From NCBI GenBank assembly GCA_026936335.1, contig JAPMXV010000002.1, positions 248,001 to 312,000 on the forward strand: a stretch of DNA of 64,000 nt, given 5' to 3'. Shown here one piece after another: positions 1-64,000 of this stretch. The DNA is from Mantamonas sphyraenae STR306 (Eukaryota; Protista; CRuMs). The number at the start of each line of letters is the position of its first letter. Within the stretch, counting starts at the first letter, position 1. The notes beneath the pieces were generated by a model. The model did no database searches, was not told the DNA's origin, and saw nothing but the letters and a program-made list of their open reading frames with translations. A program made the translations under genes and the position numbers.

Positions 1-3000
1 CGAATTCGACCGGCCTGGAAGGTGATGCGCAACTCGGAAAAGTCGCACACCGAACGACGCCTGCACGTCATCTTCTACGCTCTGCTCGTGCCCATCGATC
101 TCTTCATGGTCATTCCTGCCGTAATCACCGTTGCGCTCATCTGGCGAGCACGCAAGCTGCTCTTGGAGATTTGGCATGGCGAAGACTTTTGGCAGCTTTG
201 GGCGGCCGTCCTGTCCAACTTTTTCCTCACTCTGTTTGAGATTTTCGTGATGGGACCGCTCTTCCTCATCACATTTGTTTCCATCTATCGCACCATGGAT
301 CTCATCGGTCCAGTGATTGCCTCGACCAAAGGACTGCAGGGTGGCGTGACCTACGCGGACGCCGTCTCCATGCGCATGACCATCGACGACCGCAACAAGT
401 GCCACATGGTGTTTACTTGCCAGAAGACAGCCGCCATCGACGCAAGCCTGCGCACTGCGGAGATCACTGTGCAGTCTGGTGAGGGCTTGTGGGAAGGCGT
501 TCGCTCCAAGTTTGGCAGCTCCTCCGTCAACGTGGCCAAGATGATGATGCCTTTCAAGATGAACAAGAAGATGTTTGACATGGACCCGTACCACGCAGCG
601 GCCGTGGGGGACACCTTTGAGGTGGACTTTCGCACGGCGCCCGGGTATGACCGCGGAGATATGTTGTCGCTCCTCAACCACATGGCCAGGTACGAAACGG
701 GCAACGTGTACTTTCACTTTGGCCTGCCTGGCGGCAAGGGTGTGCTGACGGCAGCCAAAGATGAAGTTCGCCGACATGGAAACCGCGCTGCGTGAGAATC
801 GCGAGGTGAGCGACATCCAGGTACACCCGGATGCGTTTGTGCAAGAAGCCGACCCGTTTGCGTGGTACCCCGTGTACGTGCTGACGACAGCAGTGCAGTT
901 CTTCAAGCTTGTGCTTGACCTGATCATGTTGTGCGTGGCGCTGGCCACCACGGTGTGCTTCGTGTGGCGCGCCCCGATGCTGTGGGGACTGTTGTGTGAG
1001 GATGTGGACAAGTTTCCGCGTCGCAAGATCGCACGCGTGTTTGAAGAAGCGCGTGCACCGCTGCGCAAGGCGTTTCCGGTGTCATTGGACGCGTATGAGA
1101 TGCACAACGCCTTGTGGCGCAAACGCGTGTTTGCCGACCAGCACGAGGGACTGATCATGAGCCAAGAGGTGCACATGTTTGACATGCAGCGCAGCGGCAA
1201 CACCGACCGATGGATCAAGAGTGGTGAGCTGGACGGGGTTGCCGCGCAGGCACGTCACCGTGCCCAGAAGCGAGGCTTCCAAGAAAGCGAGGACAACCCG
1301 GAGCCACTGCGTGCCATGGGAGACTCGCTGCGCCTGCAAAACATGCTGGGAGAAGTGGAGACACAACTGGACTACCAGCGAATGATGTCGGGCACCCTCG
1401 ACGAGGACGCCTATCAAGTGCACAAGAGCAACTGGCGCAACGTGCGCCGCCTGAACGAAGCGCGTCTGCAGGCCGCAGCAGCTCGCTTCCAACAGTTGGG
1501 AGAGCGCGAGAGCCTGGGCTGCGGGAACGGCATCCGTTCGCGCGACCAAAAGACGATGCACGAGATCATCCTTGTGTCGCTGCTGTCGGGTGTGCTGGAC
1601 GTCCTGGGACTTGTGGGCTTGTGTGCGCTGATTGTGACGCTGTACCGCATGCCCGGCCTGATCAAAAAGCTGAAGGAGGGCCAAGGCGAGTCGGAGAAGA
1701 AGCGCGTGGTGTTTGGCGAGGTGAAGAACGTGCTGATCGACCTGGCTGCGTTTGTGGCCTCTGTGTTCCTGTTGGTGACACTGCTCAAGTCTTTGGACAT
1801 GTTCGAGGTGTGGACAGACGGCTACGAGCGGGGCGAGTTGAACGAGGCGCGCTGGAAAGTGTTTCCGCTGCTGGCCGAGTTTTACGAGGACTTTTGCGAA
1901 ATCATTGCCCAGCTCCTTTGCGACTGCGGCAACTTTTGCCTGTGCACGTTGGCCACGTGTGTGGGGTTCTGCGTGCCGGGTGCCCTCTTCTTCACGGTGC
2001 TGAGGGACAAAGAGAACGGCAACTGGTGCCAGAACTTTGTGGCGGTGTTGTGCTCCATTGGCTTCTGGGTGTTCTTCTTCCTCAGCCCGTTCGTCTTTTT
2101 GTACTCAGGCGTACCCGATTACTTGACGAGCGGCAGCATGGACGAGGCACGCACGAGCATCAACACGTTCCTGTTTGTGTACGTGGGCATCATCTTCTTC
2201 TTTGTGCTGCTGTCCCTGCCTGCACTGACGCGCGAAGGGGACATCAAGCAATTCCACGATGCGCCCGATCCGGCGAACCCGCCTGCGCTGACTTGGCCCA
2301 ACATCAACGCTCGCGTGCATCTGTTCCTGGACACCATCCAACTGTGTGCGTTTACGTTTAGCGTGGCAGATGCGATTCCTTGGCCCCTGCCTGTGCGGGA
2401 GTCGAGCAAGCAAGCCTCGGGCGTGGCCCTGTTTGACTTTGGAGTCAGCTCGGCTGGTGCAAGTGTGATTGTTGTGCTGGTGCTCATCCTGGCATGGTAC
2501 TACCTGACCACGTTCCCAGCGGTGGCCAAGGAGAGCTCGACTCGTCACGACCCGGAGACGTTTACAGAGAACAGTTCGTGGAAGTTTGCCATCCGTGTGC
2601 TAACGTCCACGTTCTACCTGACCATTGTGACGAACCTACTGAAGGCGCTCAAATGTGTGGTGGCACCAGACGGCCTGTCGCTTGTGTTGGAGGCGGACGA
2701 GTCGGTTACGTGCTGGCAGGGAGGTCATCTGGCCCTGGCTCTGCTGGCCATGCTTGCGATTGGCCACTACGTGCCCACCGCCTCTGTGTTGGCTGTGTTT
2801 TTCCACAATGTCAAGGACAACCAGAAACTGGATTTCCAGATCCTGGAGATTTACCACGTGATGTCCAACGTGATGAAGCTGTTCCTGAGCGGCGCACTCT
2901 TCTTCCTGGACACCAACACGTGGGCATACCTGAGTGCCCTGTTGGTGCTCAACCTGGTCATGCTGGTCGTCACGGCCAACTTTCCGACGATTGTGGGCAA

Positions 3001-5538
3001 CCCGGTGTGCGTGTACCCGTCGTTTTCAAACTGGAAGGCGGCGTCGTTTGGTGCAGGTGCATGGAGCGTGGTGTGCTCGATGATTGCGCTGGTGTTGGAT
3101 GACCCGAACAACTACGTTCCGGCCTACCTGTTGCTTGTCGGCTGGGCCATCATTTTCGTGGTGGTGTTTGTCGTCAATGTGTTTGTCAAGCGCAGGGTGC
3201 TGGCCGAAGCCAAGTCACGCGGTTTTGTGTCGCGTGATGATTGTAAGTTGTGTGTGAGGGATCGGTGAGGGAATGTGAGGATTCGACTGACACACGCACG
3301 TACGCACGACGCACGCACACAGTGGCCCAGCAGATGGAAACCATCATGGAGATGGTGCCAGGCACGTACAAGGTGCCCGGATGGAAACGACGCTACCAAG
3401 CGTGGACCAAGGCGCTGAAGCGATCGACGCATCCGGGTGCACTGTTGAAGCGTGCGCAAGAGCTGGAGCAGGAGCTGCAGGCACAAGCGTACGATCGCAC
3501 TGCGCTGGCCACACGTCGTGTACAGCGTGTTCAGGACCAACTGGATGAGCTGAAGAATGACGAGGAGCTCACAAACGCAAAGTTGCACAACGTGCTTGTG
3601 GAGCTGGCCAGTGTGCTCGGCAACACGGGCGCTGTGGAGGAGCATGCGGCCACGGGAGAGGGGGCCAACGGGTCGTCGTCGTCGTACGCGGTGCCGCACG
3701 TGAGTTCGACGCACGTGCATCCGAGCCTGACCGGCAACGCTCGCGTGAACAAGTCCAAGGCGTACGTTGTTCTGAACCAGGGTTGGCTCAAGTGGTACTC
3801 GGGCAAGAAGGCGGCGGAGAAGAAGCCCGAGGAACCGGAAGGGACGTTGGAGATGAGCAAGATCAACCGCGTGGTCACGGGCGACTCGTTGGTGCTGTTT
3901 GGCGTGTGCAAGGGCAAGGTTGCAACCCGGCATGTTCTGTTGATGACAACCGAAGATGACGTGCTGCTGTACTTTGACCACGAGGAGGAGGGCAAGCAAT
4001 GGTACAACGCCCTTCTGGAGGCCAGCTGGACCAGCAACTACGTGAGCACCGACGAGGCGTTTCCGTACGTGCTGATTGAAGTCCGTCGCGGCCTGGGCCA
4101 AGTGATTCAACCCGAGGCCCAGAGCGTGATTGCCACTGCGCCGTCGCCCGCATCCGGCAACAAGGAGGATGGCAAGGCAGACGTTGGCTCGTCGTCGTCT
4201 GCGCCGTCTGCTCCGCCCACGGCCACCACCAGCACCTCGGCGACTTCGCCTGCGCCGTCGGCACCCGTGGCACCCGAGGAAGATGAAGATGATGAAGAGG
4301 AGGAGGACAGCAGCGACAGCAGCGACAGCAGCGATGAGAGCGATCTGTCTCTGTCCGAGACGGAGAGCGAAGATTTGCTGAACGGAGGCTCGGGTGGCTC
4401 CAAGGTGCCCAAGAAGCTGCGCCGCAAAAAGGCACACCGTTCGAAGAAGAAGCGAGAGGAGCGTGCAAAGAAATTGCAGGAAGAGGAGCAGGGGCAGGGA
4501 GGCGGCGGCGGCAATCGCCTCGGAGGAGCTCTGCGGGGCCTGGGCAGGTTTGCAGCGAAAAAGGCCTTGGGACTGGACGAAGGAGAGCTGGACGAGTTGG
4601 AAGGCAAGATGCACGAGATGGTGGAGGCAGGACGAAAGCTGGTGGCGAGTGGAAAGGAAAAGGTCATGGAAGCAGAAACGAAGCTGATGAACAAGATGCC
4701 TGCAGCGAGGGCAGACCCGGAGATGCTCCAGGTGGCTGTGGACCTGTTTGGCCACTTTGGCTCCGGTCCACGCAAGTGGCTGGCCTTGGCTGATGGGGCC
4801 GACATCCTCGTAAGAACTTGGGACTACAAGTACGATCGCATTGTGTTTTCGCAGATGTACTCTGGCCCGTACACTGGCGTGCTTGAGCGTATGATGACCT
4901 TCCCCATGCACACCCAGTTTGGGTGGAGCCAGATGCAGCTGGTGGTGGTTGTTCAGGAGATGCCCGTCACCAACGACCAGGTGGGTTATCGACGCGACGA
5001 GGAGCATTTGTCCAGGCTGAACAGCATGAAGATGGATGCAGCCACGGTGCACTACTTTGAAGAAGCACCCCGTGCGCTGCATGTGGCCGAGGCCGACGAG
5101 GCTCGTGGAAGCATCAACACAGGAAGCCGGGAGCTGTTGCAGGTGGGGCCGATGGATGGAGGTGTGCAGAGTATGGAGGTGGGCGAAGGTGTGGGTCACA
5201 GCTCGGGGTCGGACGAGGGACGTGCTCACCAGCATCCGTCGTACGCGCACCAGCTGGTCGACCAGGAGCAGCAGCTGGCAAAGTCGATGTCTCTTGGCCG
5301 ACAGGTTGAAAACTACAACGATCACCGTCTGCTGCGTCTGATGAAGACGTATTCGTTGGAAACACCCTTGCCCCAACTGCACTACGAGGTGTGTGGCCTC
5401 AACGACGAACGCAAGGTGTTTGTGTTTGACGCCACGCACCTCAGCGGCAAAGCGGTCAACCTGCGCCTGACTTGCCATGGCGTGGACAACATTGCCGTTG
5501 TGGACGTGTTGCTGGTGGAGAACTTGGCTGCAAAGTGA
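1..5538 (+). CDS. Large multi-pass membrane protein (5'-truncated) with C-terminal coiled coil, PH domain and acidic linker; exons <1-3242, 3323-5538; probable +1 indel at ~758
   Basis: Frame is open from base 1. ORFs 22-795 and 761-3268 join if one A is removed in gccAAAgatg. Intron 3243-3322 (GTAAGT...CTGAC...CACACAG) joins ORF 761 to ORF 3250 in frame (T|TG=Leu). Many hydrophobic helices; PH-like segment VVLNQGWLKWY...PEGTLEM...EEEGKQWYNAL at ~3730-4030. Confidence 0.8.
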
Positions 5539-6021
5539 GGGAAGGTTCCCTGGTGATTGTGGTGACAATGAAGTGTGTTTTGCGGCAGATTTTGCTTCAT
5601 TCATTCGCGCGTCCATCTCAGAAAAAGGCTCAACGCGTCCAGTCATCTCATCACACCCTTCGCGCCAGAGATCAGCCTCTGCTGACGAGCAGGCACGTCG
5701 CCACACCACGACTGCGCAAGGAACGCGGCCACCCAAGAAATCACAACATGGGAAACCCCCCAAATTTCGCCATGAGAGGGGTTGCATGTGTGCACATAAG
5801 GGCAGGGTTCAACTTGCGTTTCGCAGGTGACGTCGCACACACTGCAGGCAGCATGCGGGCTGTAGGACGGGCGTGGGAAGGGTTGTGGGATTGGCCAAAA
5901 CGCGGAACCCTGTGTGACGGAATCGAACGCGACAGTGTGTTGCCGCATCCACATCCAAATGGAGGATCCATGCTCCAGTCCAACACAAGGGGTGGTGGTG
6001 CCAATGCAGCGATGAGGACAA

Positions 6022-9000
6022 TTACTTGTCGCCACCGGTGGTCGGGGCCACGGAGCCGCCCGAACGTGTGGACGCCCACCACTTCTTAAAGGCAGCCGCC
6101 TGGGTGTCCACCCACATCTTGAAGGGCGGGTGGTTGTAGTAGGCGACGACGGCGGCGACACCACCGACAAAGATGAGGGCGCCAAAGACGATGGCGATGA
6201 TCTCGCCCACGGTAAGACCGCGAGGGCCCTCGGGCACAGGCTCGGGGTCCTCCACCGTCACCTGCGGGTGGCAACCGGTCTCGGGCAGGTTGCTGCAGGC
6301 AAACGAGGTGCCGTTGCAAGCACGAGCGGCGGCCTCGCAGGCGCTGCGGCACACGGGCAGTGCGCCGTACTCACCATGGCAGGCCGGGAAGGCCGAGGCG
6401 CAGGCAAAGATCTTCATCTTGTTGGCACACAGCGTGGTGTTGAGGTCCACACGGCCGCCATAGCGGTTCTCCGCCTCCTTGTTCCAGTCAGCGAGCGAGG
6501 CCGAGGTGTATCCGATGGGCCACGTGACCGTGTCCGCACAGAAGCCCGTCGACGGGAATGCCTGGCAGCGCGCCATGTACTTCATGGCACGTACGTCACC
6601 CGAGATCTGGGCCGGCGACTCGAGAATGGTCTGGATGTTGTCGGCGCCGTAGGACGGGGAGTTGGGCATGAGGTTGGCCGGTTCCTGGTTGCCGCCAAAG
6701 ACCATCTCGCCCGTGTCGCTGCGTGCAATGGCGTACACCTGGCTGCTCGAACCGACAAACATGCGGCGCGGCTTGGCCGTCTTGGTGTCCACGGACAGCA
6801 GGTAGTCGCACTGCGAGTTGCCGTAGCACGAGGTGAACTGACCACCCACCAGCAGCGTGTCGCTGTCAATCATCTTCAGCGCATACACAGTGCTGTCCAT
6901 GGTGCGATCGCGGTCACCCAGGCCGCCAATGGCGCCCGTGGCGCGGTTCCAGCGCATCAGGTGGCGGTTGCTCGGATCGGCATATTTGTAGTAGTAGCGG
7001 CCGCCTGCATACACACCCCTGCCTGGCACGACGGTGCTGGACAGGACAAAGCTGTTGAGACCGTAGTCGGCGGGTTCCCATCCGCTGGCGCCGCGGTTCG
7101 GGGCGTACAGCGCGTAGTACGACTGCAGGGTCTGGCCGTTGTAGGCGCGAGTCATTCCTCCGCCCACAAACACGTTGCCCTCATACACAGCCACGGTTTC
7201 GACATAGTTGTCCAGACCGCCGGCGACGCTGGTGAACGTGTCGGTGACCGAGTTCCAGCGGACCAGGTAGGCGGTGTTGCGCAGCGAAAAGTCGCCCAGG
7301 GTGCTGAAGTAGCCGCCCACGTACACATCGTCGCCGTCCTTGGCAAAGCAGGACACTTGGTTGTTGGGCTCGGCACTCAGGCGCTTGAACTTGTCCGTGT
7401 CCATGTCGTACAGCACCAGGTAGCGTGCCGGCAATGTGAACGAACCACCAATCAGCAACTTGGAGGTGCCCACGCGCGTCATGGCAAGCACGTTGCCCGA
7501 GCTAAAGGTCAGACCGCCCACTGTGGTGGTGGTCGTCTGCGAGGTGGTGTTGTAGTAGCGGAAGCCCGAAGTGCCACCCATGAACACGAGATCCTTGTAG
7601 AACTCGAGGGCAAACACGGCGCCCGGGGCACTGAGACCCGTGGGTGAGATGTAGCCGCGGTTGTTCATGGGGTCAATGTAGCGCACGTTGTGCAAGAAGT
7701 AACCGCCGACCCAAATGTGGCGCGTGGTCGGGTGCTCGCGCACGGTACGCACGTTGCTGTTGAGGTTCGTGCCAGCGCCGGTGTACACCGACTCCCAGAT
7801 CTCGGTGGCCGGGTCGAAGCGCACAAGGTAGTGGCCGTTGTTGTCCACAACGCTGGTCTGTGTGTGACCGACGTACACCCACTTGCCGTCGCGAGTGGCC
7901 TCCATGGCGTACAGGTAGTGGCCGCTGCTGGTGGAGAACTGGTTGCTGCCCTGCTGCACTGCGATGGTACGCAGCACGCCCGAAGAGGAAAAGTTGCTCG
8001 GATGGAAGTGAGCCACACGCTGGGCCGGGCTGGTGATCTGATCGAAGCCGGCAAAGCTGCCGCCCATGTACACGTCGTCGCCGACCACCTCGAGGGCAAA
8101 CACGTCGTTGTCGATGCGCTGGAACGGGCTTTCCGTCAGCGGCATCCACTTCTTGGCCACGGCGTCGTAGTGCGCCACGCGGTACATGGGCTGTCCGGCC
8201 ACCGAAGTGAAGGAGCCGCCAATGTACACGTCGGTGGTGCCGTTGACGGCGATGGCGTACACGTTGCCGTTGACACGTGCACAGGCAAAGGCCTCGAGCA
8301 CAAAGTCACCACGCACGGCGCCAAATCGCGACATGATCAGGTCGACGTTGTAAAAGTTGCCACCCACCAGTGTCTGGCCCATGAAGGTTTCGATGGCGCG
8401 CACATCGCTGCTGAACTGGCGTGCGTACTTGCGTCCGGTGAAATAGGTGCCGTTGAAGGCAGCCAGACGTTCGGTGTTTGCCACGTTGGCGCTTGAGAAC
8501 TGACCGCCTGCGAGGTTGCCGTTGGCGGAGCCGCCGATGGCGTACACGCGCGAGTTGGGGCCGCTGAAGCTGCCGATGTTCTCAAAGTAACCGGTGGTGC
8601 GGTTGAACGGGGCCATGTTGGTGATGGTCACGCGGCCTTGGTTGCCGTTGGTGAAGGACCCGGCCACACACAGGGTCTGGTGGCCGTCGATCAGGGCACG
8701 CGTGACGGCGGTGCTGCCGCCGTCGAGGCGCAGCTCCTCGGGCTTGATGCCAAACCACTTGTTCTGGGCCTTGTTGTAGCGAGCGACGGCCGAAATGGGC
8801 AGGAGGTCGTTGGCCACGTTGCCCGTGGGTGCGTTGATCGCGATCGTGGCCTGTGTGGCCACGTAGACGTCGGTGGCGGTGACGTGCAGCTGGTAGCCAG
8901 TGCTTGTCAGGCCGTACCTGTCGGCAAGGACCGAATACGAGTTGGAGTCGCGGTTGTAGCGCGCAATGTTGCTCACGGCCAAGCTGTCGACGGAGCTGAA

Positions 9001-51806: not shown

Positions 51807-51876
51807 AGCATGCCAGCCAGCATCAGCATCACACACACATCTCCAAATGTACATTTCTTTTTTGCTGCTCTGTGCC

Positions 51877-52475: not shown

Positions 52476-53173
52476 ATGTCGTCCAGCAATGAGGAGCAAA
52501 TCAGCAAGGAGGAAGGCGCGACGGTAGTGGTCCGTGTCGTCAAATCCTTTGCCTACCGCAACATCAAGCATATGGTGTTCAAGGACCTGGATTTGGATGC
52601 TCTCACTGCACAGCAGCTGCGCGAAATGATCGACGCCAGTGAGTCACCACCTGCCCTGAAACCTCCTCCGCATTCTCTGCTCACACGCTCGCTCTTGTTC
52701 TTCCCTGTCCTTGGCCGCTGCCCACACCCGCCCTTCACCCCCTCCCGCCAAACTGCCTCCTCTGCCTCTCTCAGGGATTCAGAGCGAAGGCGCCTTTCGA
52801 GCATTCCGCAAGGCTACTTTTGGTGCGTTTTCGCCCTGGGGTTGTTGGGGAATCGAAAACCCTGGAAAATCTGCGATTGGGCCCCCGTGAGCTTTCCCCT
52901 TGCTGACTCTGCCCGCGAACCCCCCCCCCGCGCCATGGTCCACTCTCACTTGCCCTCTGGTCTTTCGAAACAGACACTCTCAAAATCAACCACCAGCCCG
53001 GAGGCTTCAAGGACAACAATCTGGCCATTGCCCTCGTTGAGGACGAGAAGCATCACGTGCTCGACTGGGACACTTCCCTTGCCGACAACGGCGTCGTCGA
53101 CGAGACCGAGCTCTCCTACTACAACGACGAGGACTATGCCTCGTATGTCTCTAATCCAGAGGTGAAATGGTGA
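52476..53173 (+). CDS. UPF0538 / C2orf76 / Aim29-like protein; exons 52476-52638, 52775-52822, 52974-53173
   Basis: Spliced product ATVVVRVVKSFAYRNIKHMVF...AFR...F|DTLKI...GFKDNNLAI...LADNGVVDETELSYYNDEDY...NPEVKW*. Two GT-AG introns are in frame. Confidence 0.88.
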
Positions 53174-53199
53174 GCTCAAAACCACACCAATGGACCCTT

Positions 53200-53371
53200 T
53201 CAGTCGTCTTCATTGTCGATGTTTGCGAACCCACTCGTGCGCACAAGCTGCTGCCGTTTCCGCGATGCACGCAGCTCCAACGATGGCTTCACCGTCTTTC
53301 GTGTGCTCACTTTGCGATTCCACAGCACCTCGTCGCTCTGAAGAGCCCCGGATCCCACTGTGCTGCTGTTG

Positions 53372-53402
<31 letters not shown>

Positions 53403-54504
53403 CCCCACTGCTCCCTTCCTTGTCCATCAGCAGCTTCTCCCACGCCGTGGCATTCTCAAACGCCATCTTCTGTTCCCTGGTTGCACGCACGTCCTCCAGC
53501 CGCCTGCCGTTCTTGTTGCGCAACACCCCGTCTTGCAGCGCAAGATCTGCTCCGGCTTCGCTCTCAAATGTCACAATGTCAAACGCACGCTTTGCAGGCG
53601 CCTGCGTATCCTTTCGCCGGAACCGGTTGCTGCGCTTCTGCTCCTCCACTTCCCGCAGCTTCTGCCTCTCCTCCACAAAGCGCCGCTCCTTGTTGAACTT
53701 GCGCTGCTTTGCACGCACGCTCGCCGTCTTGCGCAGGTTGTACTCTTCAAACTTTTGCGCGTCCGTCACCGTGTGCGACGTCATGTTGTAGAACGACGAC
53801 AGCGAGTCCTTGAAAAACTCGGGCTCTGCCTTCTTCTTATGCCTGCGCTGAGGCTGTGTCTCCTCTGCCGCCTGCTTTGCTGCCTCTTCGTCCAGAGTCT
53901 CTGCAAGCAGCTTTTTGTGCATACCCTCCACAATTCGCTTCCCGCGCCTCCTCGCTGGCTTCTCCTGGATCTCGTTTTCCCTCCTCATCCACAGGCGGCG
54001 CCAGCGGGTGCGGCGACGGCTTCTTCGCAAGCGACACAATGTCGTAGTTTGCCCGCGATGCCGCCAACTCGGCCCGCATGTTGCGCGGCCTCTGCGTCAC
54101 AGGATTCCTCTCTTGGCCATTGATAATGTCAAACGACTCCTGCTGCTTCGCCTTGACCTGCAACCGCCCCAGACGTGGTTTCCGGTGCGACGTTCCCAAA
54201 CAACGGTCAGTTCCACCTCGCCCCAGCCCCTGCGCCACTCCTCCCTCGTCTCGTTTCCACACAACAAACGCTCACACAATGTGGACACGCGCCATATCCA
54301 CGGCCCCACGCCCGTCGCTCTTGTCGCCCTTACCTTTTGCAGGTTCTGGAACCGCTGCGTCGACTTGGCTGCCTCCCGAGAATCATTCTGCGACACCAGC
54401 TCCTCAAATCGATGCTGCGTGATTCTCTCCACAGGCTTGGTCTCAAACTGCACCGTCTTTTTCTCCGCTTCAATGTTGCGGATGTAGTCTGCCCACGAAG
54501 ACAT
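53200..54504 (-). CDS. Uncharacterised charged/coiled-coil protein with repeated [FY][DN][IM]xx motifs; exons 54504-54334, 54157-53200; probable +1 indel ~53980
   Basis: Start MSSWADYIRNIE; intron 54333-54158 (GTAAGG...CTGAC...TGCAG) is in frame. ORFs 53837 and 53200 join by removing one G in gagGGAaaa. Confidence 0.65.
53360..53402. repeat. (GCT/GTT)n trinucleotide tract encoding a poly-Ser/Asn linker
   Basis: tgctgctgttgctgttgctgctgctgctgctgctgctgctgc is seen directly. Confidence 0.9.
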
Positions 54505-54548
54505 GGAATGGCGTCGTTTGTTTTGTTCTCCCCTTCGCCCGCACGACC

Positions 54549-56082
54549 TCACGCATCCAACATCTTCCACTGCACAAGCTCCTTCAGCGCATACTCCAAC
54601 ACATGCTTGGCATCACGCCTGTCCTCGGGCAAATTCTCTGTGATGCCCAGGATATCGCCGCACTCGCGGATGTAATACTCCAGATCGCTGTCGTCGCACT
54701 TGTTGGTCACCTGTGCCAGGCGCACTCCCTCGGACGCAAACTGTTCGTCCAGATCAAAGAGCTCCAGCGCAGGAGGAGGCGGCTCGCGGATGGCAGGCGG
54801 AAACACAGACGGTGTAAACGGCGGCAAGGGCTTCTCAAATTTGGGCGTGATCAGCGCCAGCGGCTCGTGCTTGATGTGAAGCTTGCTGTACAGCTGCACG
54901 GACTCGGGCACCAGGTCCGTGTCGAATTTAAACAGTTGGTCGTCAAACATTGACGTGAAATCCCGCGGCAGCTCCTCGCTCTCCTGCTGCAGGCATGTGC
55001 GAAGCCGCTCCGACAGCGCCGCCGTGTCGGGGAGGTACAAGTAGTCCGACACTTCAGGATCCTCAGCGTCCATGGCGTTCAGCTTCATGTCCTCTTCCTT
55101 GAACAGCCACTTGAACAGCACCTCGGCCAACACGGCGTTCTGCTGCTCCTCAAACCAGTGGTCCTCAAACACGTGTGTGGATCCCAGCACCATGAGTCTC
55201 CCGCCGCTCAATTTGTGCTCGTAACAGCCGCACACGCTCTGATTCAGCGGGTACGACACCTTGCCGCTCGAAAGCAGCGTCACTGCAGGCTGCGTCACGC
55301 TCAGCGTTGCGCCATATGGGTACACAAACGCCAGATCGTCCCTGTGTGTGTGCGTGTGTGCTCGTGTCAGCGAGGCGTTGGCCAGTGACCTCTGCATGGC
55401 GCGGAGAAACCAGGACGATCTCGCTGCCGACGCGCGCCAAAAAAAACGCATCACCCGGCAAGGGTGCCTCGCGGCCGCCGACGGCCCATGGTCACTCGCA
55501 CGGCCATTCGAACCTACTCGGATGCAACTTTGTTGGATACACTTGCGCCCACGCGCAGGATCTCCCTGTTGGTGATGCCCTTGGTGATGCAAACCTCCTG
55601 AAAAGGGGATTTTGCGCGCGCGCCAAGCGCTCAGGAGTGTGAGTGTTCCCATGCGCACACACGCCGCTGTGGTCTGGCCACGGCCCTGTGCTTGGCCCAC
55701 TCCCCACACACCCACTAACCTTGGGGTGCAGGTATTTGTAGTACACGGTACGCACTACCGCGTCCGAGTTGACGGAAAGGTAGAAGCGTTTGAGAAAGTC
55801 GTTGAGGTTGTTCTTGGGGCCTCCCTCGCCCGCCATAAACAGCACCGAGCCTCCATTTTCAATATACGACTGCATGCTATCCATTTCTTCGTCTGCAAAG
55901 TCGCCGGCTGCCCCGCAGCTGACCAGCAGCGACGTCTGCGAGAGCACCTGCTCGTCGATCTCCTGCTGATTCCCTCGCACCTGGTGGCTGTTCCTCAGCC
56001 ACCGGGTCAGCCGCTTGAACCCGTTGCCCGTGTGGAACACCTCGTTCTTGCTTTGGTTGAACGTGACCGTGCTCCCGCTCAT
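54549..56082 (-). CDS. IFT52: Intraflagellar transport protein 52; exons 56082-55720, 55597-55518, 55341-54549
   Basis: VTFNQSKNEVF...GFKRL, GGSVLFMAGEGG, NSDAVVRTVYYKYLHPK|EV, FVYPYGATLSV, LSSGKVSYPLN, LITPKFEKPLP, PPPPALELFDLDEQFASE, LAQVTNKC, DLEYYIRECGDILG. Two GT-AG introns are in frame. Confidence 0.96.
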
Positions 56083-56816
56083 GCTGAGTTGGACGAGGTT
56101 GTGTTGGCCGAGGTTGTGCGTGTGCTCCCGCCCGCCACGTGCAACGCCTCCAGCTGTCGCAATCTCCGGTCCATCATGTTGATGTAAATCACTTGCTTTC
56201 CTCGTGCCTGCCTGTATGCTTGTTTCTCGAATTCCACCAGGGCATCGGCCGCCTCTTGTTGTGCTTGGGCTGTGCGTGCCACTGTGCGCAGCCTCTCGTC
56301 CACAAGCTGCTCGAGCTTGCCCTGTCTGATTTGCCGTGGAATCAACCAATTCTGGCCCACAGCTTGGATGCGTGGCAACTCGATCAGGTACGGGACGCCG
56401 TCGTCTGTGCGAAGCACCTCTTTGTCGTGCTCCAACACAATGTTGGCCGGTGTGTCCATGGCCACCTTGCCAGTGCGCACTTTGGTGTGTGTTTTCTCTG
56501 CTGGCACGGTCATGGCCAAGTCACGTTGGCTCAGAGGCAACTCAGGCAGCTCACTGTTCTTGTCGAGTTTCATCAGTTCCTTCCACGCCTCCGTGTCCTG
56601 CTTCTGGCTACTGTGCACCAGTGACCGATCTGTGTGCGAGCTATTCTGTGTTTCCAGCTCTCCAATGGACTGAAGTGGCTTGGTGCTGCCCACACGCTGC
56701 CTCTTGTGCTCGCTCTCGTTTGATGAGACCTCTTTGTCACGCTCACGCTTGCCCCCAGCGTCCACGTGCCTCTCCAGCGCATCCAGAAAGGTCAGCGGGC
56801 CTTTGGCCCCTTCCAT
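56079..56816 (-). CDS. Uncharacterised protein with a REXO1/SRI-like helical domain, no exonuclease domain
   Basis: IPRQIRQGKLEQLVDERL...EAADALVEFEKQAYRQARGKQVIYINMMDRRLRQL resembles the helical block N-terminal to the REXO1 nuclease domain (recognised from memory). Basic N-terminus (KRERDK, KRQR). Start may be 56816 or 56843. Confidence 0.6.
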   Translation of the reverse strand: MEGAKGPLTFLDALERHVDAGGKRERDKEVSSNESEHKRQRVGSTKPLQSIGELETQNSSHTDRSLVHSSQKQDTEAWKELMKLDKNSELPELPLSQRDLAMTVPAEKTHTKVRTGKVAMDTPANIVLEHDKEVLRTDDGVPYLIELPRIQAVGQNWLIPRQIRQGKLEQLVDERLRTVARTAQAQQEAADALVEFEKQAYRQARGKQVIYINMMDRRLRQLEALHVAGGSTRTTSANTTSSNSA

Positions 56817-56944
56817 CCATTCGCCCACCCAACTGGACCACATGAGTTGTGTTGGGCCTGGACGTGCGCATCCCGGCGCAACCCGAATTCACCTCCGTTC
56901 CTGCATTGGTGTGTTGACCTACGTCTGTGCTGCAAGTCGCCACA

Positions 56945-57871
56945 ATGCGCTCGCTGCTCATAGCCACCTTCTGCATGGCCATTCTGATGTTTACCCTGCA
57001 GGCAAACGGCATCAGCGGCCACACGGCCAGCAGCAGCTCAGTCGACGACACCGTGTGTCCGCATGGCGGCCGGTTTCCCCTGCTAAAGGACGGCACACCC
57101 GACTTTGAGCCCACTCTGCTGAAAATGAGCATCGGCGAAGTGTGGATTGGCATCCTGCTGACGGTGGGCACGGCGGTAGCGGTGGCCCCTCAGCTTGTCC
57201 ACCTTTTGCGCACCCAGTCCAGCGCAGGGCTCTCCCACTGGTCTCTGTTTATGAATCTCATCACACAGTACCTCAGCATTCTTTCCCTTATTGTCATGAA
57301 GGCGCCGCAGCTGCTTGCCTGCCGTCAGGTTGGCCTGTGGCGCTGCAGCCCATCACTGCTCTCTCTAGCCCAAGGGCTCATCCTCTGGCTCGTCTCACTG
57401 CCCATCTATGTCCTCTTTCTCCGCTACTGCAAGAACAAACGAGAGCGGGCCGAGGCGGAGCGCGTGTACTATGTCCACGTGTGCATCTGCGTCCTGTGCA
57501 TGGCTTTCTCCGTCTACCTTCTCGATGCCGCTGGCCCATGTGCAGACGCCACTCGTCTGTGGGCACATACTCTCGGCGTCATCACCACCATCCTCACCAC
57601 CCTCCAGTTCCTTCCCCAGATCCAACTGACCCGTACCACGGGCCAGGCGGGCGCCCTCAGCCTGACTGCCATGTTCATTCAGCTCCCTGGCACGGTGGCC
57701 CTCACCCTGTACATAGCCGTCACCCTCAAGGAGCACATCAACGTTTGGATCTCCTACGCCGTCTCTGCCGTCCAGCAGGCCTATCTCATGTGGCTTGTCC
57801 TGCGCGGGCCTTCTGCTGCAGCGGCCGGCGACAAGTCCAACCGCAAGCGCGCCATTGCCCGAGACGTTTGA
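56945..57871 (+). CDS. PQ-loop repeat (SLC66-family) transporter with N-terminal signal sequence
   Basis: Two PQ motifs (VAPQLVHLLRTQSSAGLS; QFLPQIQLTRTTGQAGALS) and 7 TM helices. Confidence 0.88.
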   Translation: MRSLLIATFCMAILMFTLQANGISGHTASSSSVDDTVCPHGGRFPLLKDGTPDFEPTLLKMSIGEVWIGILLTVGTAVAVAPQLVHLLRTQSSAGLSHWSLFMNLITQYLSILSLIVMKAPQLLACRQVGLWRCSPSLLSLAQGLILWLVSLPIYVLFLRYCKNKRERAEAERVYYVHVCICVLCMAFSVYLLDAAGPCADATRLWAHTLGVITTILTTLQFLPQIQLTRTTGQAGALSLTAMFIQLPGTVALTLYIAVTLKEHINVWISYAVSAVQQAYLMWLVLRGPSAAAAGDKSNRKRAIARDV

Positions 57872-57896
57872 GACACACACACACACAAACACACAC
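57872..57896. repeat. (AC)n microsatellite
   Basis: gacacacacacacacaaacacacac lies directly after the PQ-loop stop codon. Confidence 0.85.
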
Positions 57897-58027
57897 GTAC
57901 AATGAAAAACATGGGTTTGGTTGAGAGTGCCAGTGGTGTGCAAACGCGGGCGGGGCCTGTGGGGAAAAAGCAGGTCGCTGTCGCTGGCCAGCCCCCCCGA
58001 CCCAACCCAAAATCCCACGCGGCTGCC

Positions 58028-61000
58028 ATGAGCTTACTCAACGGCAACCTCAACATAGGAGCGCACTCGTTCCAGACGGTGACGTTCAGTGGGGTGCCTT
58101 CGTGTGATACGTGTGGAGACGTGATGTGGGGCCTTCGCAAACAAGGGATGAAGTGCCTGTACTGCGGCTACGCGACACATCACAAGTGTGCGGACGACAG
58201 TCCGACAAACTGCACGGGTGTGGTGGTGGCCAAGGAGAACAAGGAAAAGAAGAAGAAGAAGAAGAAGAAGAGCAAGAAAAACTCGGGGGATGCAGAGGGA
58301 AGCGACGAAAAGGAAACGGGCTCAAAGAAAGGCCAACTCGGCGTGCCCTCGCTGGGCAAGCAGTCTGCAGGCTCGCTTGCGCGACGCATCAGCATCGGCA
58401 GTATGCTGTCGCCACGCAATGCCGGAAGGGACAACAGCAACAGTAACAACGACGCGCCCAATAGTGCGCCCACAAAGACCCTACGCACCAGCACCTCTGC
58501 TGGCGACATCCGCCGTTCCTCCTTGGAAGCAGACGGCTCGGATGCTGCGGGCAGCTTTGGACTGGGCAGCTCACCAGGCACGACTTCCACCCTCTCGTCG
58601 AGTGTCGGCAGTGCGGGCTCCGCGTCGAGCGGGCCATTCAGTGCCACCCTTGGACGCAAAAGCGCCCTCAGCCTTTTCGGCCGCCAACGCACGTCCAGCA
58701 GCGTCGACTCGACCGGATCCCTGTCTCATACGCCGCCGCGGCTAGGCAAGTCTGTGCTGCGGCGAAACACGGACGATGTGAGCGCCGCCTCGGTGGCGGC
58801 GGTGGCCAGTCAAAGTGTTAGCGACGGCGGCGGCGGCGAAAAGTCGTCGTCGCTGGAAGACGACTCGCTGCTGAATAAGAGACGGCACGGCGTCGATTCC
58901 AGTGACGACGAATCGGCCAATGAGACATTCAAGAGCACAAGCGAAACGAGCAAGAGCTCCGGGGTGCCGCCGCTGCAGCGCAGCGCAACGATGAGCTCGG
59001 CCACCTTTCGCAAGAAGCAGCTGGAGCTGGAGTTTGCGAAGCTCAAGAAGGAGGCAGGTGAACAGGCGGAGCGAGAAGCAGAGGCAGCCAAGGCGAAACA
59101 ATCGCGCACAGAGACAGTGGACACAACCATGAGCGAGCTGAGCGTGGAGGACACCGACGAATTTGCGGAAACGGAAGGCGACACAGACGACGAGACGGAC
59201 GGCACACACGGCGATGCGACGGACGACGAGGACGATGACATCACAGACGACGAAGAATCGGATGGCGAGGAAGAGGAAACGGAACCCAAGCCGAGGATCC
59301 TGTGGAACAAGGCGTTGCAAGTGGGGCAGGACAAGGTGGTGGCCTTGTCGCAAGCCAACGGGATGATCGAGGCAGGAGACCATGACGCCGCTCTGGAACT
59401 GCTTTCCACAGTGGAGTGGAGTCGTGCACGCGAGTTGGAAGCCAAGGTGCTGCAGCAACGAGGAGACATAGAGGCGGCCATGGACAAGCTGAAGGAGGCC
59501 CTGCAGCTAAGCCAGCACGAGCTTGCTGAAAAGACAGCGTACTTGCGCACTGCACAGGAGCTCGTGGAGTACCAAGAACGCGTCGAGACACGCCTGGGCA
59601 AGCAGTTGGAGCGCTCAGAGCGACTGAACAAAAAGACTCAAGGCCAGTTGCGCGAGGGCCTGCGCAAGCTCAACCTGCTCGAGTCCAAGGACAAGCGCAA
59701 GAAGATGGAACAGAGCAAACAGTTTGCCACCGCCCTGTCGCAGCTGACAAACACGCTGCAGCAGTTCGAAGACGGTACAAGCGAGGAGGTAAGGAGCGGC
59801 GACGGGGATTGGCTCGTGGTAGGGATGGCCGAGGCACGCCGGGACATTCACTCACACTCACACGCACGCACACACACACACACACTCTCTCGTTCGCACA
59901 CAGGCGGAGAGTGGCTCATCGTCAGGGTTCCAGGAGTTGAACGTCAAGGACAGTGTGGAAAAGAAGAAGAAGCGGTATGTGGTGTGAAATAGCATGGAAT
60001 CGGAGGAATGGTGGTGGTAGTAGTAGAAGGTGTGACGGACGTGCGTGCGTGCGCTGACACGGAGATGCGGGCGTCGCTGTGGGGGGAAACGTCAACCACA
60101 CAGACTGGAAATGAGTGCAGAGCAAGGACGGCTGTTGTGGGAGAAACTAGACAACCAGGCTGTGGACCGTGGACCCACGGGTCTGGAAAACGCGCAGTAT
60201 CGCACACGCGAAGAAAAGTACAAGATGCTGAATGTGGAAACGGAGCTGGAGGAGATTATTTCCATCAAGGGCGGCAACGTGGCGGACGACCAGCACATTT
60301 GGGCGGAACCAGACAGGGATTTGTTTGGATCGTGCATCGATCTGGTCATGAACGGCAACGAAGTGAGCCATGCGTCTGTAAACAGGCTTGTGGAACACGT
60401 GACGTCGCCGAACAACCACGAGGAAGTCAAGGTGGTGGTGCTCAACTACCGCACATTTATCTCGCCGCTGAAAATGCTGTGGAAGCTGGTGCAGCGATGG
60501 AATGTGCCTCCAGAAAACGACGCCGAGGTGCTGGAGATTGTGCAACACCAGGTGTACGAATTCCTGCTGGTGTGGCTCAGCGATCAACCGGAAGACTTTC
60601 GCCAGGACGGCGAACTGGAGCACTACCTGCGCATGTTTTTGGAGGAGCAGATGCGCGACGGAGGGCACGAGACGTGGGCAGAGCGGCTGATCTTTGTGTT
60701 TTGGAGGCTGAGGCGTCGATGCCCGAGCCCATTCTGGACCTTGCGCCGCTGCCTGACACGCCAAAGAATGTGCTGATGCCCTCGCTGGAGTGGCATGAGG
60801 TGAAGCCCGAAGAACTTGCGCGTCAGCTGACCATCAAGGATTGGGAATCGTTCAAGGAGGTGAAGGGCACGGAGTTTCTTAACCTGGCGTGGAGCAAAGA
60901 GTCGCTGCAGCACATGGCCCCCAACCTACTGGCGTGCATTATGCGATCCAATGGTGTGTCCAACTTTGTGATCAAGTCAATCATGGAGGCGGAAACGGCG

Positions 61001-61540
61001 AAGCAGAGGGGCAAGCTGATGTCTCTGTTTTGTTCGCTGGCTGCGCAGCTGAAGAAGATGCACAACATGGCCGCCATGGCGTCTGTGGTGGCAGGTCTGA
61101 ACAACCAGGCCGTACATAGGCTGAAGTTCTCACGCAAGCACCTGAAGCGGTCGGACTTGAGCGACCTGAAAAAGTGCGAACGAGTGATGAACCCCGAGGG
61201 GGCGTACAAGAGTTTCCGAGAAGAGGTGAACGCCGCCCTGGCCAGTGGCGAATCTGTGATTCCCTTCTTGGGTGTGTTTTGCTCCGATCTGACCTTTGTG
61301 GAGGACGGCAACCCAGACACGAAGGACGGCCTGGTGAACTTCCACAAGAAGGTGCTCATCTACCGCATCATCGACTTTGTGGCGCGTTGTCAACGCCACC
61401 CGTATAACCTGGTGGAGGTGCCGCAGATTTCGCGCTTCTTTGAGAGCTCGGCACTTCCCTACGAGCTGGACGAGGAGGAGACCTACCAGCGCTCGCTGAC
61501 GTACGAGCCTCGCGGAGCAAAGGCCAAGGACATTGCATGA
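58028..61540 (+). CDS. Ras guanine-nucleotide exchange factor with N-terminal C1 domain, TPR-like/coiled-coil middle, REM and CDC25 domains; exons 58028-59788, 59904-59974, 60104-61540; apparent indel ~60700
   Basis: C1: HSF...CDTCGDVMWGLRKQGMKCLYCGYATHHKC...C. REM: LNYRTFISP...LVQRW...FLLVWL. CDC25: ELARQLT...APNL...GLNNQAVHRLK...IPFLGVFCSDLTFVEDGNPD...VNFHK. Two GT-AG introns are in frame. Confidence 0.9.
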
Positions 61541-62296
61541 CGCAGCTGCGTCAATGCTGGGCCCAGAAGGCGGAAGAGAGATGAGAGATGTGAGGGGAGA
61601 GGTGATGGATCTGTTTCAAGAGAATTTTCATTTTTGGCTTTGGTTTTGCATGCGTCCTGCATCCGCGACGGTGTTTCCGTGTGGTTGGGAAGCAGGACAA
61701 GGCGGGAGGGCGGGTGGGTGGGTGCATGCAAGCAGTGACGATGTGGTGAGAGGGGTCGAGGCTGAGGAGCGAAGCGGGTGTGGTGGCCAAGGGCAAAGGA
61801 AATGCAGGGCAGAGCCGGGAAGGAACAAGCCGAGTGCACAGACACACTATGCACAGAGGGGAGGCAAGCAGGCAAAGAAGGATGGAAGTGCAGGGGTATG
61901 TGCCCCGTGTGATTGCGTAGCGAGCCTCAGGACATCATGGAAACAGAGGATGCAGCACGTTCCTTGCGGAAGCGGCGTTTCGGTCGACGCACCCATTACA
62001 CGGGGCTTTTAAAAAAAGGTACTCTGCGAGAGCCACTCGATGCAGTCGACATCACCAGGTTATCTCCATGCAAAGCACAGAAACCGGTTTTCCGAGTGCA
62101 AGCGATACGGGCCTCGGGTAAAATTGTGTTGTTGGTCGGCCTCGCGCTGAGCGCAAGACACGTAGGTCATCAATTGCACAGACACTGCATGGAGTGTGAT
62201 GGTGTGGAGCACAGGCTGGCAGATCGGAGACTGCGAGCATGAGAGAGAGAGAGATGCGAGAGAGAGAGCAAGTGCGCGTTCCGTGGCAACACGACG

Positions 62297-64000
62297 ATGG
62301 AGGAGGACGAACCGCAGCTGACGGCAGAGCAGCAGGCAGCGCTGGACGCGAAGAAGGCCATGCTTTTTGGCGGGGCAGTGGTGACATCCACGCCACAAGA
62401 AAGCGGGGAAGACGAGGACGGACGGGAGAGTGACGACGAGGACGCAGGGGAGGGCAAGGAGAAGCGGAGCGGAGTGGTGAACTCGTTGTTGGCAAGCACA
62501 AAGGCGGCTGGCAAGGAGACAGAGAGGCGGAGTGACGAGGACGAGGCGGACGGAAGCTTCCTGGAAGGCACAGGGTTCCTGGACTTTGATGCGCTGGACA
62601 TGACGACGGACGAAATCGACCTGGCGGAAATCGACGGTGAGTTGCGGCCCAGCCCTCCCTCGGAGAAACCAAGCGACCACTCACACGGGATCCACACACG
62701 CACACACAACTCACGTAGAGGACATGAAGCGCTTCCAAGAGGACGACAAGGTGAAGGAGGCGCTGCTGTCGGGCGTGGACATGCGTCAGTACCTGAAGAA
62801 AGTGGAGACGGAGCTGCACGCGGCTGAAAAGGAGAGCGTGGACGAGTGTACGTGCACACGGGGACGGGGACACAGCACATCTTCACTCCCATGGAACTCT
62901 GACACCCTTGTGGACACACACACACACGCACACGACACACACACACACACGCACGTGCACGCACAGACATTCGAGAGAGCGAAAACCTCGCTACACTCCA
63001 CGGACAGATCCGAGAGTGCGACGACATCCTGGCTGTGATGGAGGGCATGCTGTCGCAGTTTCAGGAGAACCTGGGCAACATCTCGTCGGAAATCAAGTAC
63101 TTGCAGGACGAGTCGTTCTCGATGAACATCAAGCTGAAGAACCGGCGTGCGGTGGAAGGGGACTTGGGCCATTTCGTGCAGGAAATCCTCATCTCGGAGG
63201 AACTGGTGGACACAGTGTGCAACCAGCCCGTGGACGACGAATTTGTGGACAGTCTCAAGGCCCTGGACCAGAAGCTGCGCTTCATCAATCACCACAGCGA
63301 GCGTGAGGCGCGTGCGGCTGAAGACGTCGCCCAGGAAGCCGAGTTCCTGCGCATTAAGGCAGCCACCAAGATCCGCGAGTACCTGCTGGATCTGTTTGGG
63401 TCGCTCAAGAAGCCACGCACCAACATCCAGATCCGACAGCAGAACACGCTGCTCAAGTACGCCTACATGATGGTGTTTCTGGAGGCGCACGCCAAGGATG
63501 TGGCCCTGGAGATCCAGCAGGTGTACGCAGACACCCTGTCGCGCATCTACAGCGGCTACTTTGCAAACTACATCAAGAGCATGTCCAAGATCCAGTACGA
63601 GGTGTGCGGCAAGAACGACCTGTTGGGCGTGGTCGAGCAGCAAAGCGGTCTCAACCTCAGCAAGCTGTTTGGCGGCAAGCAGAACTTTAAAAAGGGCAGC
63701 GCGTTTGCACTTGGAGGGCGAGACAAGATTGTAGGTTGGAGGGAGAAGGGGAGAGGTGCACATGCGTGTGGCTGACACTCACGCTTCACTTGCTACTTCT
63801 ACGACAGCTGGACGAGATCGACACACCTGCAATTGTGTCGCACATAGCAGAGCAGAAGGACAAGGTGCCGTACGAGGCTGTGTTTCGCTCTGTACACCAG
63901 CTGTTGATGGACGCAGCCACGAGCGAGTTTCTGTTTGTGCTGGAGTTTTTCCGCAGCAAAGAGGTGTTCAACGACGTGTTTGCAAAGTCGCTGGCTCTGG
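62297..64000 (+). CDS. VPS52: GARP/EARP complex subunit Vps52 (3'-truncated); exons 62297-62636, 62719-62847, 62967-63730, 63808->64000
   Basis: VKEALLSGVDMRQY...VETEL...SVDE|YIRESENLATLHGQIRECDDIL...MEGMLSQFQENLGNISSEIKYLQDES...IKLKNR, TNIQIRQQNTLLK, PYEAVFRS...LLMDAATSEFLF. Three GT-AG introns are in frame. Confidence 0.95.

Follow-up and report, generated by a model that had tools for sequence, protein, structure and literature searches.

The + strand of a stretch of nuclear DNA from Mantamonas sphyraenae is G-rich in some parts and C-rich in others, which raises the question of whether this asymmetry follows the genes or records a process that acts on the chromosome as a whole. The window is the whole stretch of 64 kb, positions 248001-312000 of chromosome C2 in the Mantamonas sphyraenae assembly, and it was analysed together with C2:1-200000, giving 264 kb of one chromosome from a genome of about 66 small chromosomes (PMC10492846). 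The assembly comprises 78 contigs, of which 59 bear two telomeres and 14 bear one (~132 ends). As a measure we used S4, the GC skew of the + strand at fourfold-degenerate codon sites. Twelve genes of both orientations, verified with Pfam, were used for a codon check. A literature search found no published description of Mantamonas skew, and the words "skew" and "strand" are absent from the text of the Mantamonas genome paper.

Whole-sequence GC skew per kb lies between +0.1 and +0.37 at ~1-18 kb of the window and between +0.07 and +0.27 at 27-33 kb, turns to -0.08 to -0.29 at 33-58 kb and returns to +0.04 to +0.21 beyond 58 kb, in agreement with the preliminary description, which had the + strand C-rich over ~32.6-57.9 kb and G-rich thereafter. 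This pattern far exceeds chance: the standard deviation of 2-kb bins is 0.158 compared with 0.059 for shuffled 200-bp blocks (0 of 500 shuffles reached 0.158), and the fourfold sites are strongly heterogeneous across the window (chi2=1084, df 31). Hand counts reported for four introns proved exact on recount, namely 17041-17080 in the minus-strand HSP10 gene (G22/C2), 31701-31740 in a plus-strand gene (G17/C6), 55681-55720 in the minus-strand IFT52 gene (C21/G6) and 52681-52740 in a plus-strand gene (C30/G9). The skew is stronger than was first read by eye; over the 264 kb, S4 ranges from about -0.9 to +0.86, with extremes that recur at comparable size (-0.85, -0.81, -0.77, +0.70, +0.86 and -0.63).

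Features of the window, with + strand skew at fourfold sites (S4) and the genes that lie in them
Feature	Positions	S4	Genes and codons
Weakly C-rich tail	1-760	-0.22 in first ORF; step of +0.53 at ~760	
Broad rising ramp (C to G)	1333-12146	about 0 to +0.7; no reversal at 6 or 9.3 kb	two plus-strand genes; minus-strand 2946-aa Rax2/Fz gene (Pfam)
G-rich maximum	12147-16710	+0.7 to +0.86	minus-strand genes only: Rax2/Fz, second Rax2-like ORF; 74-85% C-ending codons in own sense
Falling transition (G to C)	16711-19819	+0.79 to about 0; 26% non-coding	minus-strand HSP10; its two introns G-rich on + strand (G128/C27, G88/C33)
Near-zero plateau	19820-25769	-0.11 to +0.14	plus-strand Rax2/Fz paralogues
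Short rising transition	25770-28088	about -0.1 to +0.5	
Small G-rich crest	28089-31262	+0.2 to +0.56	minus-strand RMD1-3/TPR and IF-2B; plus-strand ORFs with equal + strand sign
Falling ramp	31263-38909	+0.4 to about -0.4; zero crossing ~31.5-33.5 kb	extends into minus-strand 3312-aa ORF
C-rich domain	38910-54497	-0.25 to -0.63	plus-strand F-box/LRR and THH1/TOM1, 76% C-ending codons; minus-strand giant ORF and DnaJ, about 68% G-ending codons
Rising transition	54498-59481	-0.6 to +0.4; zero crossing ~58 kb	IFT52 (minus), PQ-loop (plus), C1-domain gene (plus)
G-rich domain	59482-64000	+0.13 to +0.68	plus-strand genes; RasGEF, 67% G-ending codons

Mapped at neutral sites, the sign changes previously placed at ~0.7, ~32.6 and ~58 kb are real. 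Two smaller switches, from G to C at ~6 kb and from C to G at ~9.3 kb, are absent, as the + strand stays G-rich throughout this region (whole-sequence skew +0.05 to +0.15, S4 +0.22 to +0.54), and the apparent dip is due to codon position 1 in a minus-strand gene. The G-rich span proposed for ~9.3-32.6 kb holds except at 18-27.5 kb, where skew is lacking (about 0 for the whole sequence, S4 -0.11 to +0.16). We rejected a recent inverted duplication as the origin of this zero-skew block because its genes share just 24-28% identity with the Rax2/Fz gene next to them.

S4 is unrelated to gene orientation over the 264 kb (r=-0.03), and the effect of the sense strand on fourfold GC skew is -0.007±0.024. 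Adjacent genes agree in S4 to the same degree when they are opposed (r=0.69, n=37) as when they are co-oriented (r=0.70, n=77), and 28 of the 37 opposed pairs share its sign, which bears out the initial proposal that the skew domains are independent of gene orientation. Non-coding DNA behaves alike: in 4-kb bins its skew correlates with that of fourfold sites (r=0.84), and regression gives a non-coding skew of 0.01 + 0.59*S4 - 0.003*orientation. The comparison of these two classes of site, which had been suggested for the locus, thus finds skew persisting at both without following the transcribed strand. Because it is equally present at fourfold sites and in non-coding DNA belonging to unrelated genes, mutation is favoured over selection as its source. 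Pfam-verified genes on either strand carry the sign of their domain; in the 12-gene set, the + strand share of G among G/C-ending fourfold codons is 0.24-0.33 in the C domain and 0.52-0.85 in the G domains. Genes of mixed orientation occupy the domains with no directional-cluster structure, and the mean S4 step is -0.005 at divergent and +0.024 at convergent gene pairs. Promoter geometry showed no association with skew switches in the 264 kb, and S4 transitions run smoothly through giant ORFs, inside which they are as frequent as at promoters. Transcription-coupled mutation or repair, or R-loop skew, including directional gene clusters of the trypanosomatid kind, is common among eukaryotes (PMC3787257, PMC3315797) and could claim the small sense-strand component of AT skew at fourfold sites (+0.065±0.028), but with neither fourfold nor non-coding GC skew responding to orientation, with orientations mixed in the domains and with steps untied to strand-switch junctions, it is a highly implausible source of the skew. 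On this basis we read the skew as a single strand asymmetry of effectively neutral sites that acts genome-wide and independently of transcription.

We then considered the chemistry of the bias. G and C exchange 1:1 while GC4 is constant at 0.71-0.75, and A follows G weakly (fourfold AT skew = 0.04 + 0.34*S4). Because A, not T, accompanies G at fourfold sites, the asymmetry is of the purine/pyrimidine type, unlike the bacterial G+T type. Codon position 2 is also shifted with the skew (slope 0.19), and rising zones have a slightly higher GC4 (0.751 versus 0.718; r=0.215, p=0.017 without correction for autocorrelation). Against contigs assembled from public reads, the window shows 40 listed differences with a transition/transversion ratio of about 0.9, and the Mantamonas genome can therefore be called transversion-rich. 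Depth is flat in these contigs, 6 kb of which could be placed. Counts of trinucleotide contexts (e.g., TpC) are confounded by the skew of flanking bases, and no conclusion was drawn from them. Loss of repair genes as a reason for the strength of the skew is unsupported at the level of domain presence: the genome has matches to 6 MutS_V, 4 MutL-type, 1 UDG and 3 Y-family polymerase domains, and no family was missing among the mismatch-repair, uracil-glycosylase and Y-family polymerase domains searched.

The skew profile is graded. Per 200 kb it is fitted by 35 constant levels or by 21 linear ramps, the ramps performing slightly better (BIC-like score of 1003 versus 1023). About 21 transitions, each 1-18 kb wide (median 3-5 kb), fall within the 264 kb; like transitions are 10-42 kb apart, the alternating G-rich and C-rich stretches measure 5-25 kb each, and single steps amount to 0.4-1.24. 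G-to-C transitions are 3.1 kb wide compared with 5.0 kb for C-to-G (p=0.10), and the non-coding share is 0.235 at G-to-C switches versus 0.08 at C-to-G switches (p=0.002), the latter lying in coding-dense surroundings and in several cases within giant ORFs. The shape expected of origins, sharp there and gradual elsewhere, is visible only weakly, with slope skewness of -0.24 (CI -0.59 to 0.13) and -0.47 (CI -0.87 to -0.05). The 264 kb contain no tRNA genes, at switches or elsewhere, and the one AT-rich island that might mark an origin lies outside every transition.

The left end of C2, the one chromosome end that was read, gives a clue to polarity. Its + strand is C-rich through 72 kb with a single polarity, and S4 forms a plateau of -0.7 to -0.85 between 4.5 and 15 kb from the telomere, a shape that a local process acting on the kb scale would not give. 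The terminal 4.5 kb have a skew of -0.32, weaker than the following 10 kb, which fits neither polarity simply. The telomere argues for a leading strand rich in G, whereas the G-to-C switches, sharper and richer in intergenic DNA, argue for one rich in C, which would require origins beside telomeres. The two clues point in opposite ways. A leading strand need not be G-rich, since S. cerevisiae, K. lactis and C. albicans have one rich in C and A (PMC3459929), and with G-to-C switches being the sharper class, either class of switch may hold the origins.

In the preliminary description, replichores were proposed to be sharply fixed and bacteria-like: the leading strand would be G-rich, C-to-G switches would be point origins, and termini would lie midway between them. 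The three sign changes at neutral sites agree with such an arrangement, as does the telomere of C2, the polarity of which fits outward forks with a G-rich leading strand. Nevertheless, we hold it to be improbable, as the profile has many graded levels and two of the three proposed origin-terminus pairs depend on the absent switches at 6 and 9.3 kb. Nor is the midpoint rule for termini clearly followed: falls lie at relative positions of 0.73, 0.46, 0.75, 0.45, 0.67 and 0.29 between rises, and their mean |r-0.5| of 0.157, compared with 0.25 if uniform, comes from six geometrically constrained values. In the window, the fall at ~34 kb has a relative position of 0.23 once the rise at ~27 kb is counted. 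Moreover, the C-to-G transitions, where point origins were placed, are the broader and coding-dense ones, G pairs with A rather than T, and the premise that C-to-G marks an origin is not established for eukaryotes and fails in the yeasts.

Another architecture-linked strand process, apart from fork direction, could be imagined, such as a chromatin- or telomere-oriented bias in damage or repair, or selection on strand composition. Its appeal is that described replication skews resemble this one in neither amplitude nor the pairing of G with A and that the terminal 4.5 kb of C2 and the zero-skew block are not simply explained. We know of no strand-specific process of such kind, and the equality of skew at fourfold and non-coding sites speaks against selection, leaving this explanation a slim chance.

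A footprint of recombination and double-strand-break repair would arise if transversion alleles were converted strand-specifically, with a different strand single-stranded and in heteroduplex on each side of a hotspot, so that the skew flipped at hotspots and G+C stayed unchanged. Mismatch repair corrects purine-purine mismatches better than pyrimidine-pyrimidine ones, with C-C the worst. Repair dependent on mismatch type would be expected to give the purely transversion-type asymmetry found here, which is strongest for G/C, with A/T shifted less but likewise towards purines, and leaves GC4 constant. The slight rise of GC4 in rising zones also points this way, as do the dense crossovers implied by the number of small chromosomes. 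However, a hotspot signal should fade within a few kb, whereas plateaus of |S4| 0.7-0.85 extend over at least 10 kb and the single sign over 72 kb from the telomere far exceeds known resection and heteroduplex tracts; transitions are equally frequent within giant ORFs and at promoters, which is also at odds with it. We therefore regard recombination as an unlikely source of the skew.

The reading that we prefer is that the strand skew is probably a fossil record of the direction of replication forks, about 10 times that of yeast or human in amplitude. A mutational difference between leading and lagging strands would accumulate as a skew footprint, so that local skew would reflect the long-term mean direction of forks, and several initiation zones of partial efficiency alternating with termination zones would produce graded ramps and plateaus. 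The underlying bias would be of the transversion type, enriching purines, chiefly G, on one strand and pyrimidines, chiefly C, on the other at constant G+C. The recurrence of extremes of like size suggests saturation where replication is fully one-directional; with |skew| saturating at about 0.8, pyrimidine-to-purine and purine-to-pyrimidine changes would differ about five-fold between strands, and saturated skew would imply a replication programme that is stable over evolutionary time. In yeasts and human, skews linked to replication are established for third codon positions and intergenes (PMC3459929), and domain-wise, transcription-independent skew at fourfold and non-coding sites is the expected look of a replication-direction footprint, which supports this reading. 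Against it stand the steps of 0.4-1.24, about ten times the 9% jump of S. cerevisiae, human and eubacteria (PMC3459929), and the pairing of G with A, since bacterial and human skews pair G with T and yeast skews pair C with A.

Vertebrate mitochondria likewise have near-saturated fourfold skew with gradients along the molecule, but they are a single replicon driven by transitions (deamination), whereas the Mantamonas skew is nuclear, spread over many domains and of the transversion type. A nuclear likeness is found in the budding yeasts S. cerevisiae, K. lactis, L. kluyveri and C. albicans, where skew is present at third or fourfold positions and intergenes and varies between origins tens of kb apart (PMC3459929, PMC3590768) without gene enrichment on the leading strand, as in Mantamonas. 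The yeasts differ in their jump of about 9% compared with steps of 40-124%, in a leading strand rich in C and A where Mantamonas has G with A and C with T, and in having origins that are mapped experimentally. In human N-domains, skew is proportional to mean fork direction, as inferred here, with rising and falling segments and plateaus, and initiation zones are broad rather than point-like (PMC4729899, PMC3320577). N-domains nevertheless measure 0.1-3 Mb compared with 5-25 kb, have an amplitude of about 10% with a clear transcription component, which is zero in Mantamonas, and co-enrich G and T. Bacterial replichores are similarly independent of orientation at neutral sites and readable by eye, but they show a two-level step with one origin, one terminus and a G+T leading strand (PMC10030826), in contrast to the many levels and G+A association in Mantamonas. 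The sole comparably large eukaryotic nuclear jump that we found cited is the GC-skew flip of 74% at centromeres of C. albicans and Yarrowia, which in C. albicans is argued to be non-replicative (PMC3459929); it spans about 3 kb on each side of one centromere per chromosome, whereas the Mantamonas skew tiles the arm to the telomere.

In a more specific form, which we put forward tentatively and would rate somewhat below an even chance, the nuclear skew may be near-saturated, about 10 times that of yeast and human, and amount to a fossil map, at kilobase resolution, of some 1,000 zones where replication starts or ends in a deep-branching eukaryote. The mutator behind it would be unusual, of the transversion type and favouring purines on one of the replicative strands. 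It is tempting to speculate further that the sharper intergenic G-to-C switches would be the origins, in which case every chromosome would be replicated inward from telomere-adjacent origins. Replication origins are difficult to map in eukaryotes other than yeasts and animals, and a skew so strong would permit them to be read from sequence, extending origin reading to CRuMs, a lineage near the base of Amorphea. The skew also implies a roughly five-fold difference between complementary transversions, an asymmetry for which we know of no mechanism. Finally, within a domain the choice of synonymous codons is opposite for genes of the two strands, and in the Mantamonas genome a bias will enter measures of codon usage, gene finding trained on a single region and phylogenetic models.

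The GC skew of the whole sequence reaches extremes of +0.37 and -0.29 per kb in the window, and the four hand counts of intron G and C on which the preliminary description had based alternating strand domains all proved exact on recount. In 2-kb bins the standard deviation is 0.158, versus 0.059 when 200-bp blocks are shuffled (0 of 500 shuffles as high), and the lag-1 autocorrelation of 0.79 is lost on such shuffling. ORF segments were called by codon log-odds, true frames being recognized by GC3 > GC1 > GC2 and G-rich first positions, and the measure S4 sets G against C at their third positions that are fourfold degenerate, always read on the + strand. At these coding-controlled neutral sites the skew is stronger than in the whole sequence, with S4 ranging from about -0.9 to +0.86 and marked heterogeneity (chi2 4365, df 131). 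All statistics refer to 264 kb of one chromosome, namely the window and positions 1-200000 of its contig, C2. The assembly comprises 25,061,354 bases in 78 contigs with 59% G+C; C1 and C2 carry TTAGGG repeats at both termini, and C2 runs from telomere to telomere over 439,802 bases. Only one case of 150-bp windows below 42% G+C occurs in the 264 kb, thus the base composition, skew apart, is very even; ARAGORN found no tRNA genes in all 264 kb.

The skew is blind to gene direction. Across 116 ORF segments, S4 and orientation are uncorrelated (r=-0.03), neighboring segments agree equally well when co-oriented (r=0.70, n=77) and opposed (r=0.69, n=37), and adjacent opposed genes give a sense-strand effect of -0.007±0.024. 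Pfam matches confirm the orientation of twelve window genes; in the G-rich domains, plus and minus genes show codon-ending preferences opposite to those tabulated for the C-rich domain. Non-coding skew tracks S4 across 4-kb bins (r=0.84), with a regression of 0.01 + 0.59*S4 - 0.003*orientation, and in HSP10, a minus-strand gene, the two introns count G128/C27 and G88/C33 on the + strand. Under coding control the skew neither disappeared nor followed the transcribed strand, the two outcomes that the preliminary description had named as contradicting it; a transcription-coupled origin is excluded because both S4 and non-coding skew ignore gene orientation, and the skew is without a transcriptional component.

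Coordinates of features on C2 and in the window
Feature	Position	Strand	Observation
ORF series beside left telomere	C2:1139-42505	+	nine successive ORF segments, all directed away from the telomere; several very long (2008, 2916, 2655, 2812 codons); hardly any non-coding DNA between
Terminal gene	C2:1139-4015		S4 -0.32, far weaker than -0.8 over the next 10 kb
Non-coding gap	C2 ~4.0-5.3 kb		1.3 kb; contains the step from -0.32 to -0.8
Low-G+C case	C2:106729-106960		below 42% G+C
Single gene	C2:109279-110499		S4 -0.37; neighbors on both sides +0.3 to +0.6
Single gene	C2:161466-162512		S4 -0.21; neighbors on both sides +0.3 to +0.6
Rax2/Fz cluster	window 6022-27737	both	at least six large ORFs; four with Rax2-type beta-propeller domains, two of them also with a C-terminal Frizzled (Fz) cysteine-rich domain
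3312-codon open frame	window 33709-43647	-	coding signature; no Pfam hit with E up to 0.001; traversed by the fall in S4 and by the onset of the C-rich plateau
F-box/LRR, THH1/TOM1, PQ-loop genes	C-rich domain, window ~33-58 kb	+	67-76% C-ending codons
DnaJ, IFT52, 3312-aa ORF	C-rich domain, window ~33-58 kb	-	67-69% G-ending codons

The shape of the profile departs from the fixed, bacteria-like replichores first proposed. Reversals placed at ~6 and ~9.3 kb are absent at neutral sites, where S4 ranges from +0.22 to +0.54; raw skew dips there owing to a gene on the minus strand whose first codon positions are rich in G. Likewise, the + strand at 18-27.5 kb, described as G-rich, is unskewed (S4 -0.11 to +0.16). 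Recent duplication does not account for this zero-skew block, because the Rax2/Fz genes are old paralogues, only 24-28% identical to each other. Instead of two states, 35 constant levels or 21 ramps are needed per 200 kb, the ramps being slightly better (BIC-like score 1003 versus 1023; 283 versus 288 for the window alone), and, measured between 20% and 80%, the 21 transitions are 1-18 kb wide. Nor is the predicted midway placing of termini between origins demonstrated: expressed as a fraction of the interval from one rise (C-to-G switch) to the next, falls (G-to-C switches) sit at 0.73, 0.46, 0.75, 0.45, 0.67 and 0.29. The two sign-opposed single genes may lie in segments that moved or were inverted recently and are still short of re-equilibration.

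Over the first 72 kb from its left telomere, C2 is C-rich on the + strand. S4 forms a plateau (-0.7 to -0.85) between 4.5 and 15 kb, climbs slowly to -0.1 by 36 kb and drops again to -0.8 at 43-48 kb, and the alternation goes on beyond, with like transitions spaced 10-42 kb apart. The repeated extremes near 0.8 look like saturation.

As to the chemistry of the bias, between the sextile of bins richest in C and the one richest in G the share of C at fourfold sites drops from 0.58 to 0.20 and that of G grows from 0.13 to 0.56, at a steady G+C of 0.71-0.75; A increases from 0.127 to 0.153 and T decreases from 0.161 to 0.093 (AT skew = 0.04 + 0.34*S4). Purines therefore collect on one strand and pyrimidines on the other, a split which, we infer, is obtainable solely from strand-asymmetric transversions. 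This pairing of G with A differs both from the G+T pairing seen in bacteria and human (PMC10030826, PMC3459929) and from the C+A pairing of yeasts (PMC3459929). Comparison of window 8001-14000 with contigs built from three public DNA runs gives ~47 differing sites (0.8%); among 40 listed differences, 19 are transitions and 21 transversions (A/T, the largest class, 11; C/G 4; A/C 4; G/T 2), with six changes clustered at 10799-10804. For this one 6-kb stretch of unpolarised changes, the spectrum is unusually transversion-rich. Every repair domain family searched (mismatch-repair, uracil-glycosylase, Y-family polymerase) was found in the genome. In the 264 kb, skew at codon position 2 also tracks S4 (slope 0.19). 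Compared with proteins from the pyrimidine-rich strand, those from the purine-rich strand contain 3.5 times more Glu, are richer in Arg, Lys, Trp and Met, have roughly half as much Pro and are poorer in Thr, Ser and Tyr, a contrast confounded by gene-family content.

A purine/pyrimidine bias at constant G+C would follow naturally from asymmetry in recombination or heteroduplex repair, yet such a source cannot easily produce 10-kb plateaus and a 72-kb arm of single sign. Some other process of chromosome architecture, of no known kind, is a further contender of low probability, as the amplitude and base pairing of the skew fit no described replication skew: steps here are 0.4-1.24, compared with a jump of ~0.09 in S. 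cerevisiae, and for the 74% skew jump at centromeres of C. albicans a non-replicative origin has been argued (PMC3459929). On balance, we favor the skew as a probable footprint of replication direction, because replication is the known kind of process to combine strand specificity, blindness to transcription, continuity across tens of kb and a direction that is necessarily uniform close to the end of a chromosome. In yeasts and in human, skews of this type at third codon positions and in intergenes are well documented (PMC3459929, PMC4729899). The ramps would then trace fork direction between zones of initiation and of termination, rather than delimit fixed replichores. We found no published account of Mantamonas skew in the literature, and the terms 'skew' and 'strand' are absent from the paper on the M. 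sphyraenae genome, a FALCON assembly (PMC10492846).

The polarity of such a footprint was initially set by the premise that C-to-G switches mark origins, the leading strand being G-rich, which yeasts contradict with a C- and A-rich leading strand (PMC3459929). Simple telomere logic, with forks running outward, also gives a G-rich leading strand. Counting against it, falls are narrower than rises (3.1 versus 5.0 kb, p=0.10), are marginally steeper, and occupy DNA with a threefold higher non-coding fraction (0.235 versus 0.08, p=0.002), rises often passing through giant ORFs. In most eukaryotes, origins are intergenic and localised. The weak skew of the terminal gene is simply explained by neither polarity. 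Origins at rises can also accommodate the switch-width and non-coding data, in a picture resembling that of human cells, whose initiation zones are broad and for the most part non-transcribed (PMC4729899). We rate the two polarities about even. If origins are intergenic and localised in Mantamonas, they would coincide with the G-to-C switches, pyrimidines would be enriched on the leading strand, and efficient origins would sit at the ends of chromosomes; origins at C-to-G rises would instead require the giant ORFs of Mantamonas to be poorly transcribed.
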